Positions 1 to 38,962 of a stretch of DNA of 64,000 bases are shown here, piece by piece (the stretch's first letter is position 1; each line of letters opens with the position of its first letter). The stretch lies in assembly GCF_006345805.1 (NCBI RefSeq), contig NC_043001.1:26660001-26724000 (forward strand), read 5' to 3'. This DNA is from Octopus sinensis. Lineage: Eukaryota. The translations under genes and the position numbers were made by a program. The notes beneath the pieces were generated by a model. It was not told the DNA's origin. It saw nothing but the letters and a program-made list of their open reading frames with translations, and did no database searches.

Positions 1-385
1 AAATAGGTAGAAATTCATCGACGATTTGTCTGAAATCACGTCAGCATACATTTGTCAAGGCCAAGAACTTGATATGTATGTTAAAAAAACAAACAAAAAA
101 AAAGGAAAAAAAAAAAAAAAAAAGGAAATTTAAGTATGTAAAAAGATACTTCCTCTCCCAACGTTAAAAATTAGACCAAATTTCTCTTTTCAAAACCAAG
201 GGATGAATAGGATAAAAGCAAATCACCAGTGAGGAATGTATAATCAAAATGACAAACGCCCTTGTTAAAACAGTATATTCTAAATCCTCAAGATAAAGAA
301 TGAGAAATAATTATAAATAGAACCGGCAGCAGAAAGATGAATTACAAAAGGTTGTTTTAAAATGAGGCTTCTCTTCAAGTCAAAA

Positions 386-391
386 TTTATT
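386..391 (-). promoter_or_regulatory. Candidate polyadenylation signal AATAAA of MAT
   Basis: First canonical AATAAA I found on the minus strand downstream of the stop. An ATTAAA variant lies at 568-563. Confidence 0.5.
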
Positions 392-1526
392 TGTTAAAAA
401 AATCAATGTTCCTCTTGTACATCAATGTTCCTAAAATGACCAAAAAATAAAAATATATACAATGTTCTATAATCAGAACCACTCTCCCAATTTTTCATTA
501 CAATCATGACAGTTACATAGATGATATTTAGAACATAATGAAAATGTGTGCATGGACATTTCTTTAATATTCAGCACACAAGTTCATCTTTGTAAGTCTT
601 AATTGAAGAAAATGCATTTGTGAATGAATAAAAAACTTTTACACACATGCCCGCATAATCAGTCTACAAATGAAAGTTCATGAATAATGTATTATTTTAG
701 AGGAATGAAATAGTGCAATACAATGAAAAGCACACTCAGACAGACACAAAAATATGTAAAATATTTTTAGAGAAAAATATTTCTATATTTGCTTCTAATT
801 TGAACGATACCAGCACTCGCAGTGGAGAGCACTGCAACTTTACTCTCTAAATACCTTGCAATGCTGTCCACTGTATCGATGTAGTCCCGAGTGTTTATAA
901 CTAGTGCTCTTTTCCAATGAATCTTCATAAACACAAGACAAATGTGCATGTAAGAAGCCGAAGTTAATGACACATTTGCAGCAGATAAAGAGAACCAGGC
1001 AAGAACTCAATGGACACCATACCTATATATACATACATTATAATAACAAAGTTACCAAATGCAGTTCTAAGCTAACTTACATGAAATGCAGGTACCAAGT
1101 TTTGCACTGTAATAGAGTGCAAGAGCCATTTAGCACTATACTACAGTTATAGTAACAAACTTGAATATACCTGATTGAATAATTTTGATTCAAATAAAGA
1201 CACTTCAGAAAATTTGTTGCCAAAACACCAAATTAGCTGAAGTCAAATAAATAAATAAATGTTGTACTCTAAGAATTTCTACATGTATATAGAAACAAAA
1301 GAAAAAGGGAAAATGAAATGGGTTAAAAAAAAAAAAAAGGCGTCCTATTGATGATCAAGTCTGCCTATTCATTCACTGTGGATTACAACTGCCAGTATCA
1401 TTTAAGGTTACACAAACAAAAATTAAGAGGAACAATGATTAAGAATATATATATATATATATGTAAAAAAAAACTGAAAAAAAACCCAACAAAACCCAGG
1501 TTTAGAATAATAAAACCACTTCCAAC

Positions 1527-1629
1527 TTAATACTTTAGCTTTTTTGGGATTTCCCATTGAAACTCGGGTCTTCCAAAGTGCCCATAACACGCCGTCTTTT
1601 GGTAGACTGGACGACGTAAGTCGAGCTCT
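1527..1629 (-). CDS. MAT2A: MAT exon 8, coding part ([33 protein letters not shown])
   Basis: Acceptor ttttcag|A; stop TAA at 1529-1527. Confidence 0.96.
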
Positions 1630-4600
1630 CTGAAAAGAAAAAAAAACAGAAAATGTTGAAAATAGCTGAATACAAGAAAAAAAAACAACAAAACAAAACA
1701 AATAAAACTGAAAAATAAAACAAAGGAATAAAAAGAAATTAAAAAAAAACACTTACCTTACGATCTTGCCAGGTCTCAGATCAAAATTCTCATTGACAAT
1801 ATCCAGCAATTCTTTCTCAGTTTTTTTAGATGTACCGTAACTAAAAACACTGATGGATAGTGGCCTAGCAATTCCAATGGCATAGGAAATCTGAAGGCAA
1901 AAGATACATAACAGCAATTATAATAAAATTCAGTATCCTTGTTTAACCATTTAGCATTCAGATTACTGTCAAATGTAATGCTGATCTAATATATAAATCC
2001 CGTTCTGTCTGTTTGTGCGCTTATAACTCGAATATGTGAATCTGATTGATATCTGTGGTTGCTATGCAATAATTTGTTAGTAGTTCTAAATTACCACTGG
2101 GACAGCTCTCTTCTTTAATAAACAGTCATGAACTTTGTACCATATAGCTTGCCAGAAATATTTTTGATGTTATCAAAGCCCCTTATATTGCTATTTTTGC
2201 AGAGAGATTACTATTTTAAGCATTATGGCTTCTGTGCTGGTGGCACATAAAAAGCACCATCTGAACGTGGCTGATGCCAGCGCCGCCTCGACTGGCTTCT
2301 GTGCCAGTGGCACATAAAAAGCACCATCCGAACGTGGCCGATGCCAGCGCCGCCTTGGCTGGCTTCCGTGCCGGTGGCACGTTAAAAGCACCAACCAATC
2401 GTGGCCGATGCCAGACTCCCCTGGCACCTGTGCCGGTGGCACGTAAAAAAGCACCCACTACACTCACGGAGTGGTTGGCGTTAGGAAGGGCATCCAGCTG
2501 TAGAAACATTGCCAGATCAGACTGGAGCCTGGTGCAGCCCCTGGCTTCCCAGACCCCGGTCGAACCGTCCAACCCGTGCTAGCGCGGAAAACAGACGTTA
2601 AACAATGGTGATGATATATTACTAGCAGAGACACCCAACATTGCTCGGGATTAAAATGGCATAGTTTGTATATAATATATTAAGCTTGAAACAGGTGACC
2701 GCGCTGAAATTTTAAACATGGATACATGAGAGAGTGGGGTGTTCCGTAATCTAAAAATATTTTAAAAGTTGAGAATCGCTATTCTTGTAATCTTTTTGCC
2801 CTATTTCTTCCAGCATGCTGTTCATTAAAAGCAACGAGTTGCTCAGACAGCTGTCACATACCATTTCACCGGCAACAAGGGGAGCACAGGATGACAGTCA
2901 GCCTAAACCCTTGCTATGCTGTCTCTTCTTTCCCCTCTCTCTATATGCAGAGGGCTCAATATGATTATCTAATTTAAAGCAGCAGTCGTCAAATGCAAAA
3001 AGCCAAAGAACTGTTAATACATATAAACATACATAAGACAGTAGGGTGTTTTGAGGGAGATTTGGCGGCTATTTCTACCAGGTCTAGCTATCATGTAGCG
3101 GTTTCCCTCATTGACTCATACATACATAAGATAGTAAGGTGTGATTTGAGGGAGATTTGGCTGATATTTCTACCAGGTCTGGCTACCATGTAGTGATCTC
3201 CCTCATTGGCTCATCTAATATATAAATCTTGCTCTGTCTGCCTGTTTTTTGTGTGCTTATAACTCAAGTATTGTTCATTCAATTGCGCTGAAATTTTAAG
3301 CATGGATATGAGAGAGTGGGGCATTCCGTAATCTAAAAAGATTTTCAAAATTGTCAATGTCCAACAGAATAGCTAGCTCTCAGAAACAGACTACATACAA
3401 ATTCGTTCTTCACAACTCCTGAAGCTGTTTTCAGATATGATCCATCCCATTCTTATAAAAAAATTAACTCTGTCCAAATTGGTGTGCTAAACACAAATTG
3501 TCTTTACTGTAGAGCTTTAAAATTTTCAAATGAAACAAATGGTATGTGCTGCTCAGGTAACAATGCCAGCACTACCAGCTCCTTCTCAACCTCTAATGGA
3601 TCTTCTAGAAGGCATTTCTATCCAGTCAAAGGATTTTCTGAACAATATCAGACAATACAACTCTGCACATGACATCGTTTGGTGCATCTAAGAAGATAGA
3701 TAAACATGGATTTACGCGGACGTCAAAGTTCAAGGGTAAGTCTATCACTTCATTGGTTCCTTGTTACCCACAAATGAACAACCACAGTTCCTCTAAATTT
3801 ACTTTATGAGTGATGTAGGACAACAAACCCGAAGGAGGTGTCAACATTTCAGATAATGGGTTGTGTTAGACCTAGCATCGCTGACTGCTGCAAAAGAGAG
3901 TATACCCACTGACAGCTTCTTGGTGCGTTCAAAAATCACATAACCCCCAAAGGTAAGGGCCTGAAATACTCCAGACGCATAGCAAGTTGCTTAGTTGAAT
4001 TAGCCCATCATTTACTACCAAATGTTACTTTCCCCTATCACCTGTTTCAACATAACTGTAATATGTTATATACAAACTATGCCATTTTAATCCCGAGCAA
4101 CGCCGGGTGTCTCTGCTAGTAATATATATAATGCTTAAAATAGTAATCTCTCTGCAAAAATAGCAATATAAGGGGTTACGATAACTCCAAATATTTTCTG
4201 GCAAGCTATATGGTACAAAGTTCATGACTGTATGTTTACTAAAGAAGAGAGCTGTCCCAATGGTAATTTAGAACTACAAAAAAATTATACCTTAGCAACC
4301 ACAGATATGAAACACCATAAAGTTAACTTTCAGAGTTTAGTATGCAAATGTAGATTTAATGAGAAAATACTAAACACAAGATTAAGTATGCTTTAAGAAC
4401 TTCAGATATGTCCATGAATGTTACTGCTTAGCTGACATACAGTTTTAGATTTAGTAGGGTGGTAAGGATGAATAACTGCTTAAATTATGAAGATGTGCTA
4501 CATATAAGTGGGCGCTGAAAAGTTCCTAGCTTTGGGTAAGAGAAAATACAGGAAGATCAGTTAATTATGATATTATTCAACATTCCCCTCTCAGATTCAG

Positions 4601-32990: not shown

Positions 32991-33098
32991 TCCACATGTA
33001 TAGATACATGTATGCATGTGTATATTTTTATATATGTATGCATAAATCATCATATGTGTGTGTGCGTGCATGTGTGTGTGTGTGTGTGAGTGCTTGTG

Positions 33099-33172
<74 letters not shown>

Positions 33173-33275
33173 ATAATAAGGGTAAAATTAATTAATTAAT
33201 TAGTAATTAATAATTTTACCAAGCAATGTTCAGTATGTAAAAGGACCATTTACGGTCAATCCTAATTATATAAAG

Positions 33276-33322
<47 letters not shown>

Positions 33323-33484: not shown

Positions 33485-33719
33485 CTTTTATTCTTTTATT
33501 TGTTTCAGTCATTTGACTGCAGCCATGCAGGATCACCAAGTTTAGTTGAACGAATCAACCCCAGGACTCAGTCATTGTAAGCCTAGTACTTAGTCTATCA
33601 GTCTCTTTTGCAGAACTGCTAAGTTATGGGGATGTAAACATACCAACATTAGTTGCCAAGCAATAGTGGGGGATACAAACACAGAAACACAAGCACACAC
33701 ACACACATACATACATACA

Positions 33720-33790
<71 letters not shown>

Positions 33791-35665: not shown

Positions 35666-37293
35666 ATATATGTATATATATGTATATTTATACACATTGA
35701 GCTTCTTTTAGTTTCCATCTATAAAACTCACTCATAAGGCTTTGGTTGGGTGAGGGCTATAGCAGAAGACACTCACCCAAGGTGCCATGCAGTAAGATTG
35801 AGGAATCAAACTTCTTACCACACAACCATAGCTGTGCCAGTTTTTACAATATGAATACTTGGAAACAGAAACAGCAGTGTTCAATACAACATTTTCTAGA
35901 TATTCAAGGAATTTTAAAGATGGTTCTCTTTCTTTTCCAACTGGGGTAAACATGTATCTTTTCTATTGCGAGACACCTGTTCCTTTCCTTCTATCTCTAT
36001 CATACCTTAATCTTTCATCACTTGGCATAAAGCTATTTTCTTCAATACTATTCCCCTCTCTCCGTGGAAGGCTTTTGTCTCACAGGTTACTTGGTGACCT
36101 GACAAGACACATCCAGTACAGTCTGTAAGCTGTTTGGCATTGGGGTGGGGGCATCCAGCTATAGAAACCATGCTGAAGCAGACATTGGAGCTTAGTCCTC
36201 TGGCTTGCCAGCTCCAGTGAAACCTTTTAACCTATGCTGTGGTGATGTTGCTTTAATTGGTTGATTATTATCCTGTTCACAAATTTTCATCAAGCTTTTT
36301 CTGAGTGTGTTTCTTGATATTTATTTCACTTGATTGAGTTGTTTGTAAATACCTATTCACCAGATGGCTGTCTTTTTTCTTCCTGTCTCGGCTCAGAGTA
36401 TAACTCCTTGTCATCATCAGTGTTGATATCGATGTTGGTTGTCATTGGTGGAACCAGCAGTGTCAGTGTCATTAGCAGTGACATTGTCATCTTTATTATT
36501 TAACATCTATGATGGAAGGAAGGCTTTTTTTTAAAAATACTTTTGGGGTATCCTCTTCTTCCATTATAATTATTCTGTTGATTGAAGGAGCTGGAAATAC
36601 GAAGAATGAAGTTCTCAGGCGGAGTAAAGTCAATAACCGTTTATTCACAGGTATTTCATACAAGGGGTTTACTTTCAGTAACCATCTTCACAGAAGTGCG
36701 TAGTTAGCCTTCTCTCCCATTCACATGAGGTTCAAAAACCTCTGGAGACAGTGCATGTGGTATCACAGCAGGACAAATGTCCACTGTGAGCTCCTAGCTT
36801 TAAAGTCTTGCTCATGTCAGCGTGAGAAGAATGAGATGGAAAATGTTGTTTTCTTTTCCTTAATTAATGGTTGCAGGTGGGATCTCGCTTTTGTCTCACA
36901 CATGGCAATGTTTGCAGGCGAGATCTCACTGTTTCAAAATGGTGCTAGCTTCCTTGTGCCTTGCTACACAGCCATGCTGGTATGGGCTTGACTGTTTAGA
37001 TATCTGTTGAATAAATTTTCTAACCATGATAATTATTTACAGCCAGGTGTATTGAGCTATTGAGATCTATGTAACTTTGCTATGGTGAACTGAAGCAATA
37101 GGATAAAATTACCGGTTTCGTGTAAGCTTTTGAAATTTCTCATGAGAAATTTGAAAAGCTTACACGAAACCAGTAATTTCTCCAAAAACTATGTTACTAT
37201 ATACAAAATTTTATAACATTTTTCTAACATAACAACTTAAATATATTCTTTAACCTTATAAAACAAGCCTCCTGTAGTTTTTTCACTCTTTTC

Positions 37294-38096: not shown

Positions 38097-38962
38097 TATA
38101 TATCTCTTTACTCTTTACTCTTTTAGTTGTTTCAGTCATTTGACTGCGACCATGCTGGAGCACCGCCTTTAGTCGAGCAAATCGACCCCAGGACTTATTC
38201 TTTGTAAGCCTAGTACTTATTCTATTGGTCTCTTTTGCTGAACCGCTAAGTTACGGGGACGTAAACACACCAGCATCGGTTGTCAAGCAATGCTAGGGGG
38301 ACAAACACAGACACACAAACATACACGCATACACACATATATATATACATACATATATACAACGGGCTTCTTTCAGTTTCCGTCTACCAAATCCACTCAC
38401 AAGGCTTTGGTCAACCCAAGGCTATAGTAGAAGACACTTGCCCAAGGTGCCATGCAGTGGGACTGAACCCAGAACCATGTGGCTGGTAAGCAAGCTACGT
38501 ACCACACAGCCACTCCTACGCCTATATATATATATAGGCGCAGGAGTGGCTGTGTGGTAAGTAGCTTGCTAACCAACCTCATGGTTCCGGGTTCAGTCCC
38601 ACTGCGTGGCACCTTGGGCAAGTGTCTTCTGCTATAGCCCCAGGCCGACCAATGCCTTGTGAGTGGATTTGGTAGACGGAAACTGAAAGAAGCCCGTTGT
38701 ATATATGTATGTATATATATGTGTGTGTATGTGTGTATGTTTGTGTGTCTGTGTTTGTCCCCCTAGCATTGCTTGACAACCGATGCTGGTGTGTTTACGT
38801 CCCCGTAACTTAGCGGTTCAGCAAAAGAGACCAATAGAATAAGTACTAGGCTTACAAAGAATAAGTCCCGGGGTCGATTTGCTCGACTAAAGGCGATGCT
38901 CCAGCATGGCCGCAGTCAAATGACTGAAACAAGTAAAAGAGTAAAAGAGAGAATATATATAT
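38097..38962. mobile_element. Two SINE family B copies head-to-head, forming a spacer-less palindrome
   Basis: Centre CC(TA)7GG at 38521-38538. Heads have A-box-like TGGCTGTGTGG and B-box-like GGTTCAGTCCC. Confidence 0.9.

Follow-up and report, generated by a model that had tools for sequence, protein, structure and literature searches.

A conserved stem-loop beside an ancient covarying element in the 3' untranslated region of the octopod SAM synthase gene

Whether a long stem-loop beyond the coding end of a SAM synthase gene acts on that gene, and in what way, is the question raised by the stretch examined here, a 64,000-nucleotide (nt) piece of the Octopus sinensis genome (contig NC_043001.1, positions 26,660,001 to 26,724,000), hereafter the window. 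Its minus strand carries the gene for S-adenosylmethionine (SAM) synthase (MAT), whose eight coding exons, located by tblastn and translation, run from about 17,955 to 1,530 and whose spliced product matches the annotated Octopus S-adenosylmethionine synthase (O. bimaculoides/O. sinensis) at 100% identity. The hairpin occupies the stretch 650-720 nt past the MAT stop codon, on the same, mRNA-sense strand. An initial annotation read it as a lineage-specific regulatory structure and a candidate for SAM feedback of the METTL16 type, passing over a two-hairpin element of ~100 nt (window 979-885, minus strand) that ends 6 nt upstream (5') of the hairpin and is the locus's strongest feature. This element is specific to MAT 3' untranslated regions (3'UTRs), deeply conserved and covarying. 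The hairpin may be an octopod-specific accessory stem of the ancient control region that the element would form, a reading to which a probability of about 0.45 is assigned.

Fold and conservation of the octopod hairpin

The hairpin is most likely situated inside a MAT 3'UTR of about 1.16 kb, because the mRNA strand offers just two canonical poly(A) signals, ATTAAA (568-563) and AATAAA (391-386), both downstream of it, and because similarity between Octopus and Argonauta persists to about position 353 before falling to ~50% or less. A homologous AAUAAA context in Argonauta aligns with the octopus AATAAA, and the initial placement of the hairpin upstream of the first AATAAA holds. Over the whole UTR, identity to O. 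sinensis amounts to 94% in O. bimaculoides and 62% in Argonauta hians, and the first 1540 bases of the window likewise show 94% identity to O. bimaculoides, against 100% to the O. sinensis chromosome CM016863.1 (GCA_006345805.1).

The anatomy first described for the hairpin is confirmed by the letters: a stem of 18 positions on the minus strand with one C.C mismatch (17/18 paired), a loop of 18 nt, and a pair 832/861 that is a U.G wobble on the mRNA strand (coordinates in Table 1). The segment 805-878 is a GC-richer island, with 48.6% GC against 30.5% in the predicted UTR, and no second copy of an arm was found within the 64 kb at up to three mismatches, in agreement with the claim that it matches no repeat in the window. 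The outer CGAUA/UAUCG helix is present in the O. sinensis sequence but is not conserved, both of its CpGs being CpA in Argonauta. On the minus strand the predicted fold reaches -31.8 kcal/mol (z score -3.83), with 0/200 composition-matched shuffles as stable. The plus strand folds as well (-26.6 kcal/mol, z -3.64), and a single-sequence fold gives no choice of strand; the whole 231-nt region is thermodynamically ordinary, with a z of -0.79.

Conservation was assessed in three octopod sequences, from O. sinensis, O. bimaculoides and A. hians, in which the hairpin fold yields z scores of -3.8, -3.4 and -3.3, respectively. Fifteen of the 18 stem pairs are invariant, two A-U pairs are G-U in Argonauta, and one is a constant mismatch (C.C becoming A.C), so that the three Argonauta changes, all on the 5' arm, are structure-neutral. 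Octopus and Argonauta differ at 3/36 stem positions as against 16/35 loop and flank positions (Fisher p 4e-4). The Argonauta loop carries five substitutions and a 3-nt deletion, and in the bulge the four bases following the 3' arm, CGAG, are fully substituted with UGCUGGUAUC retained. Conversely, a 21-nt run that includes the 3' arm (840-820) is invariant in all three octopods, the fifth longest such run in the UTR.

The strand specificity claimed at the outset is recovered by comparison, the sense hairpin being more stable than the antisense in 3/3 octopods, with sense/antisense values of -25.8/-22.2, -25.5/-22.2 and, in Argonauta, -24.3/-16.1 kcal/mol. With every wobble pair on the sense strand, the sense hairpin keeps within -24 to -26 kcal/mol, and this sense/antisense contrast gives the strongest indication that selection acts on the mRNA strand. 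Taken across the octopods, the pattern of change supports purifying selection on the hairpin, in which respect the notion of a lineage-specific stem-loop stands, its METTL16-type SAM-feedback link being the part that is not supported.

Two further cephalopod MAT transcripts, one from a Logan RNA assembly (L005) and one from a JGI metatranscriptome (L031), encode a protein with 87% identity to that of octopus, compared with at most 77% for other molluscs. Their similarity to the octopus UTR extends as far as the 5' arm of the hairpin, where they offer just a 4-base-pair (bp) CAGU/ACUG mini-hairpin. The long hairpin was found neither in these two non-octopod transcripts nor in any other lineage compared; since L005 and L031 are without it, the long stem is an octopod feature, and the comparison indicates that the hairpin arose in octopods and is kept there. 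The 108 nt located 3' of the core of the ancient element give z scores between -1.2 and +1.5 in 12 non-octopod sequences, versus -2.8 and -3.8 in octopods. An ancestral hairpin at this place, of which the octopod stem would be the local version, was rejected, since outside octopods this segment is no more stably folded than shuffled sequence. Structure immediately 3' of CUCGGG is not common to all lineages, consistent with the hairpin as an octopod addition. Small stems can be seen by eye 3' of the core in several lineages, three of which (L017, L019 and L011) share AUACAGUAA/UUAUUGUAU. Pairing of the core tail CACUCG with CGAGUG (819-814), which would enclose the hairpin, was also considered and rejected, occurring in O. 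sinensis only and failing in O. bimaculoides and Argonauta.

The ancient element directly upstream

The conserved block at about 994-885 is essentially 100% identical across the cephalopod UTRs compared, far above the coding sequence, with perfect runs of 65 and 44 nt in the three octopods and ~100% identity of the element in L005 and L031. The element consists of two hairpins, stem A and stem B, joined by a UCUU linker. Stem A is closed by GCAAAUG/CAUUUGU and is variable at its top. In stem B, GUGUUUAUGA (934-925) pairs with UUAUAAACAC (900-891) around the loop AGAUUCAUUGGAAAAGAGCACUAG (924-901), outer pairs are formed by C937-G887 and U936-G888, and the tail reads UCGGGA (890-885). Across lineages stem B retains GUGUUUAU/AUAAACAC together with two to three more pairs, and its 22-24-nt loop AAUUCAUUGGAAAAGAGCACU hardly varies.

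Support for the element comes from covariation, not from energy. The three inner pairs of stem A show eight further standard pair types in eight lineages, and in an alignment built by anchoring on the conserved ends 92.5% of stem A cells are paired and 8 cells are changed on both sides, a score reached by 0/500 shuffles. For stem B, 99.4% of cells are paired and three pairs are changed on both sides, with 0/500 shuffles again reaching the score; the double changes comprise U-A to C-G in locus L018, A-U alternating with G-C across lineages, and a third, in lobster, that depends on the alignment. Additionally, single-sequence folds independently recover both stems in octopus, oyster and the loci L020, L013 and L022, with differing inner sequences of stem A. 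The G.U pairs of the element are invariant on the sense strand, which favours sense RNA as the molecule under constraint.

A coding explanation of the conserved block was examined, as two frames are open and a 60-amino-acid UniProt open reading frame covers it; a conserved peptide is excluded because one-base indels occur in the loops of oyster, tubeworm and lobster, and positions that would be synonymous are fully conserved. The UniProt entry in question, A0A0L8FIQ0_OCTBM, an O. bimaculoides 'uncharacterized protein' of 60 amino acids, is the translated UTR element plus hairpin (window 770-949, minus strand) and almost certainly a spurious gene model. As a separate observation, CACAUUU occurs twice about 60 nt 5' of the core in loci L017, L019 and L024, providing two mutually exclusive partners for stem A GCAAAUGUG, a possible alternative-pairing arrangement.

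The distribution of the element was surveyed in cephalopods, oysters, a tubeworm, a lobster and about eight further marine lineages. Translation of the conserved block in one open frame as a protein query led to spurious open reading frames on non-cephalopod contigs bearing MAT exons. A scan of metagenome collections with an invariant 20-mer returned 12 loci, 10 of them with recognisable upstream MAT coding sequence on the same strand; the same kind of scan with a cephalopod-specific 24-mer gave no match, and a 46-amino-acid C-terminal MAT peptide used to search for 3' transcript fragments met just three unrelated metagenome fragments. The element was located 310 nt after the MAT stop codon in oysters (two Crassostrea/Magallana assemblies and two RNA contigs) and, in the tubeworm Lamellibrachia satsuma, 300 nt beyond the stop codon of one member of a tandem MAT pair. 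R1, a covariance model of the 66-nt core (the stem B part), scores 91.4 bits in octopus and 85-95 bits across the cephalopod, oyster, tubeworm and metagenome loci, oyster and tubeworm both standing at 85. A looser copy, scoring 48 bits (E 1e-10), stands 470 nt past the MAT stop codon of the lobster Homarus americanus. Overall, in oysters, Lamellibrachia, Homarus and about eight further marine lineages, the element shares the strand of MAT and begins 300-600 nt past its stop codon. In the L. satsuma tandem (L029, 1-1535 and 5001-18944) it follows the upstream copy only, with no match within 5 kb after the other.

Because cephalopods, oysters, a tubeworm and a lobster share it, the element, judged by its sequence distribution, predates the split of molluscs, annelids and arthropods. 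None of the eleven loci gave an Rfam 15 match to the element, prokaryotic genomes and viral contigs scanned with a gapped core pattern yielded 0 matches, and neither its sequence nor a described MAT 3'UTR element of this kind was found in the searchable literature. The ancient MAT element thus appears to be undescribed so far.

To our knowledge, SAM synthase is subject to RNA-level feedback in every system studied, through bacterial riboswitches, vertebrate METTL16 hairpins and a nematode methylated splice site, and for most animal phyla we know of no MAT cis-element. The ancient element, almost letter-perfect between octopus, oyster and tubeworm and recognisable in lobster, a span of more than half a billion years, is a concrete and testable cis-element candidate for MAT control in protostomes, and is a more valuable result than the hairpin. 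The hairpin, of moderate interest in itself, offers a natural experiment in which a new stable stem has been added to an ancient control element, and a defined place to look for RNA editing or small RNAs in a group known for both.

Possible roles and rival explanations

The most direct expectation, a METTL16-type SAM-sensing hairpin analogous to vertebrate MAT2A hairpins hp1-6, is very improbable. The octopod hairpin does share gene and transcript region with the MAT2A hairpins, which are likewise conserved stem-loops in the 3'UTR of a SAM synthase gene under feedback control at the RNA level, and its O. sinensis loop contains AGAGAG. However, the nonamer UACAGARAA was not found on the mRNA strand of the MAT gene, and the loop motif is not conserved, reading UUUAGAGAG in O. 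sinensis, UUUAGUGAG in O. bimaculoides and UUUCAUAA in Argonauta. A UACAG (875-871) does occur, at the paired base of the stem and not in the loop. The Rfam models MAT2A_A-F (RF02260-RF02265) have no match at E<=10 in window 1-3000, MAT2A_B in Argonauta reaches just 15.3 bits against a 45-bit cut-off (E 9.5), and ten further MAT 3'UTR loci are likewise free of MAT2A matches at E<=1. A UACAGARAA loop is absent from the hairpin and the ancient element alike, as is a covariance-model match; instead, one 18-bp stem adjoins two hairpins with an invariant loop of 22-24 nt, in protostomes and not vertebrates.

Two other modes of RNA-based control of SAM synthase invite comparison. In nematodes and insects, a stem-loop at a 3' splice site of sams/Sam-S is methylated by METT-10, with a proposed coupling to SAM-dependent expression (PMC8208822), and for Drosophila Mettl16, methylation of Sams was not detectable under normal culture conditions (PMC13608003). 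The METT-10 element resembles the octopod features in being an invertebrate RNA structure in a SAM synthase transcript, but its place is an intron-exon junction and it depends on UACAG|A, which is absent from 7/7 octopus MAT 3' splice sites (UUUCAG|A, UUGUAG|G, UCUUCAG|G, GUUUCAG|G, AUUUCAG|G, CCUUCAG|A and UUUUCAG|A). Bacterial SAM riboswitches (SAM-I to SAM-VI and the SAM/S-adenosylhomocysteine class) share with the ancient element the character of a conserved, covarying RNA attached to a SAM synthetase gene, although here the RNA stands in an animal 3'UTR and a ligand role is only a candidate.

That candidate can be phrased as a metazoan aptamer responsive to SAM, S-adenosylhomocysteine or methionine, formed by the ~100-nt element, with the octopod hairpin as its expression platform and the hairpin's 3' arm masking the aptamer loop. 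The proposal is suggested by unpaired nucleotides that are near-invariant, helices that covary, a strict tie to a single metabolic gene and no recognisable protein or microRNA (miRNA) motif, a signature of the kind by which bacterial riboswitches were found. Retention of such an aptamer would reach back to the protostome ancestor, and perhaps further should the marine contigs turn out to be cnidarian or deuterostome. No metazoan riboswitch is known to us, and Rfam riboswitch families have no match at E<=10 in the octopus locus or at E<=1 in the ten other loci; the riboswitch-like proposal is a long shot.

Alternatively, the hairpin might be a precursor miRNA, with the invariant 3' arm (~21-22 nt, AAAGUUGCAGUGCUCUCCACUG) as the mature 3p miRNA and the 5' arm as the star strand. 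A hairpin of ~55 nt with a variable loop, one arm perfectly conserved over 21 nt (840-820) and three changes on the other does resemble animal precursors, and octopods are rich in lineage-specific miRNAs (PMC9699675). The supplements of that study gave no match, but their files do not list miRNA sequences, so this is not decisive. Placement of all three substitutions on one arm has a p of only about 0.125. A canonical primary or precursor miRNA has a stem of ~33-35 bp (~22-bp upper plus ~11-bp basal part) with single-stranded flanks, whereas the conserved stem here has just 18-19 bp, less than a canonical Drosha substrate needs, and the further ~11 bp of basal pairing required are irregular in Octopus and lacking in Argonauta, leaving the hairpin without a conserved basal stem. 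Two species gave weak generic matches to precursor models (mir-33, 23.0 and 20.5 bits; also mir-2941 and mir-142), yet the best of them, mir-33 at 23 bits, falls short of its cut-off of 50 with a seed unlike that of miR-33. Every Rfam miRNA family remains below its cut-off, and in Argonauta the same models match the antisense strand too. A miRNA origin is accordingly rated as distinctly unlikely.

A substrate for ADAR or for another double-stranded RNA (dsRNA)-binding protein is a further candidate, in which the need to keep an editing duplex would explain the slow evolution. The duplex of 18 bp, with one mismatch and 17/18 positions paired in three octopods, has the ~15-20 bp size for binding by a dsRNA-binding domain. 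Coleoids edit RNA very heavily and conserve the sequence around editing sites. Both paired Argonauta substitutions are A to G on the sense strand, and the mismatch there becomes A.C, a favoured editing context; however, no other transition at an A-U position would leave it paired. The octopod hairpin also resembles Staufen-binding sites, in size and place only: the 19-bp stem of the ARF1 3'UTR, for instance, is likewise an imperfect duplex of ~18-19 bp in a 3'UTR, of a kind able to attract dsRNA-binding proteins and so to cause decay or localisation. Its size and the A-to-G changes make such a substrate plausible, with a rather low probability as a separate explanation; it overlaps with the accessory-stem reading and does not exclude it.

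The hairpin might, finally, have no function of its own, reflecting linear constraint beside the ancient element or a low local mutation rate, with the inverted repeat a relic of an inverted duplication in the octopod ancestor. This explanation and the caution due to the accessory-stem reading draw in part on the same facts. Although the stem is kept in all three octopods, no compensatory double change occurs among its 18 pairs in the three species, and the stem could be conserved as sequence instead of structure. Folds at least as stable occur in 0.7% of 80-nt windows, at 23 distinct places in the 64 kb (both strands), most of them palindromes, microsatellites and GC-rich repeats; against the real genome fold energy is only weakly distinctive and would not carry the hairpin finding alone. 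The same UTR contains several other invariant islands without predicted structure, and other cephalopods have the CAGU/ACUG mini-hairpin at the same place. Weighing further against an accessory role, the octopus MAT 3' end is predicted from genome sequence and not mapped on transcripts, and the ancient element works without the hairpin, since the latter is missing elsewhere and the downstream regions are not significantly structured. Absence of function is nonetheless unlikely, though to be taken seriously, given the sharp contrast of stem with loop and flanks, the neutrality to structure of all three stem changes, and the retention of sense stability in Argonauta while the antisense loses 6 kcal/mol.

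Under the accessory-stem reading, the older element would be a cis-acting site controlling MAT mRNA output, through stability, translation or choice of 3' end, and the octopod hairpin would be a lineage-specific accessory stem of that control region. The hairpin could offer a dsRNA-binding protein a rigid double-stranded platform, or act as a lock keeping the invariant 3' arm paired, an arm that could otherwise mask the complementary core loop. That either part regulates MAT, that the two work jointly and that a factor reads them is what we infer. A link between the two is suggested by their close spacing of 6 nt. The lock derives from an exact 8-nt Watson-Crick complementarity between the 3' arm at 833-826 (AGUGCUCU) and the core loop at 910-903 (AGAGCACU), with 29/5000 arm shuffles doing as well and a duplex energy of -15.4 compared with -9.2 +/- 2.5 kcal/mol. 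Found post hoc, this complementarity is a lead for a masking or lock mechanism and not evidence; it recurs only in locus L022, as an analogous GAGUGCUC ~150 nt downstream of the core, and an 8-nt pairing would, in thermodynamic terms, normally lose to the 18-bp hairpin, all of which counts against the joint mechanism.

Coordinates and other observations in the window

Table 1. Coordinates of MAT 3'UTR features in the window (position 1 is its first letter)
Feature	Coordinates	Strand	Basis
Last MAT coding exon (stop codon TAA 1529-1527)	1527..1631	-	tblastn, translation
33-nt run invariant in three octopods, holding CCACAGU (1381-1375)	1368..1400	-	octopod alignment
Predicted MAT 3'UTR, ~1.16 kb; 3' end inferred, not mapped	365..1526	-	poly(A) signals, Octopus-Argonauta similarity
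Stem A of the ancient element: GCAAAUGUGUCAU (979-967) pairing with AUGCACAUUUGU (949-938), apical part variable	938..979	-	folds, covariation
Stem B of the ancient element, with loop and tail	885..937	-	model R1, covariation
Outer helix of the hairpin, 5' strand CGAUA (878-874); in both Octopus species, lost in Argonauta	874..878	-	fold, alignment
Hairpin 5' arm CAGUGGACAGCAUUGCAA; three changes in Argonauta	856..873	-	fold, octopod alignment
Hairpin loop GGUAUUUAGAGAGUAAAG; variable	838..855	-	octopod alignment
Hairpin 3' arm UUGCAGUGCUCUCCACUG, within invariant 21-nt run 840-820	820..837	-	octopod alignment
One-sided 10-nt bulge CGAGUGCUGG (819-810) and outer-helix 3' strand UAUCG (809-805)	805..819	-	fold, alignment
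AATAAA poly(A) signal, likely main 3' end; ATTAAA 568-563 possible earlier site	386..391	-	signal scan

Among the invariant islands, the CCACAGU motif was found 95-613 nt upstream of the core element in 16/16 MAT 3'UTRs examined, its usual form outside the octopods being GACCACAGUAG. In some lineages CCACAGU is able to pair with (CU)ACUG just 5' of stem A.

The last MAT intron (1632-1755, minus strand) is just 124 nt long, and its retention would bring an in-frame UAA right after the splice donor. Vertebrate MAT2A is controlled via retention of its last intron, which makes this short octopus intron of interest. Another MAT intron contains, at 2220-2600 on the plus strand, three tandem copies of ~60 nt (GGCACATAAAAAGCACCATC...GATGCCAGCGCCGCC) followed by a GC-rich tail resembling a transfer RNA or short interspersed nuclear element, with the tandem copies ranking among the most stable folds of the window.

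Elsewhere in the window, a palindrome at 38114-38945 has 416-nt arms that are 95% complementary with no spacer, and the arms of a second, at 37106-37179, measure 37 nt; in appearance the two resemble foldback or transposon-type structures. Long (TA)n and (TACA)n microsatellites at 33090-33320 and 33715-33790 dominate the list of inverted repeats.

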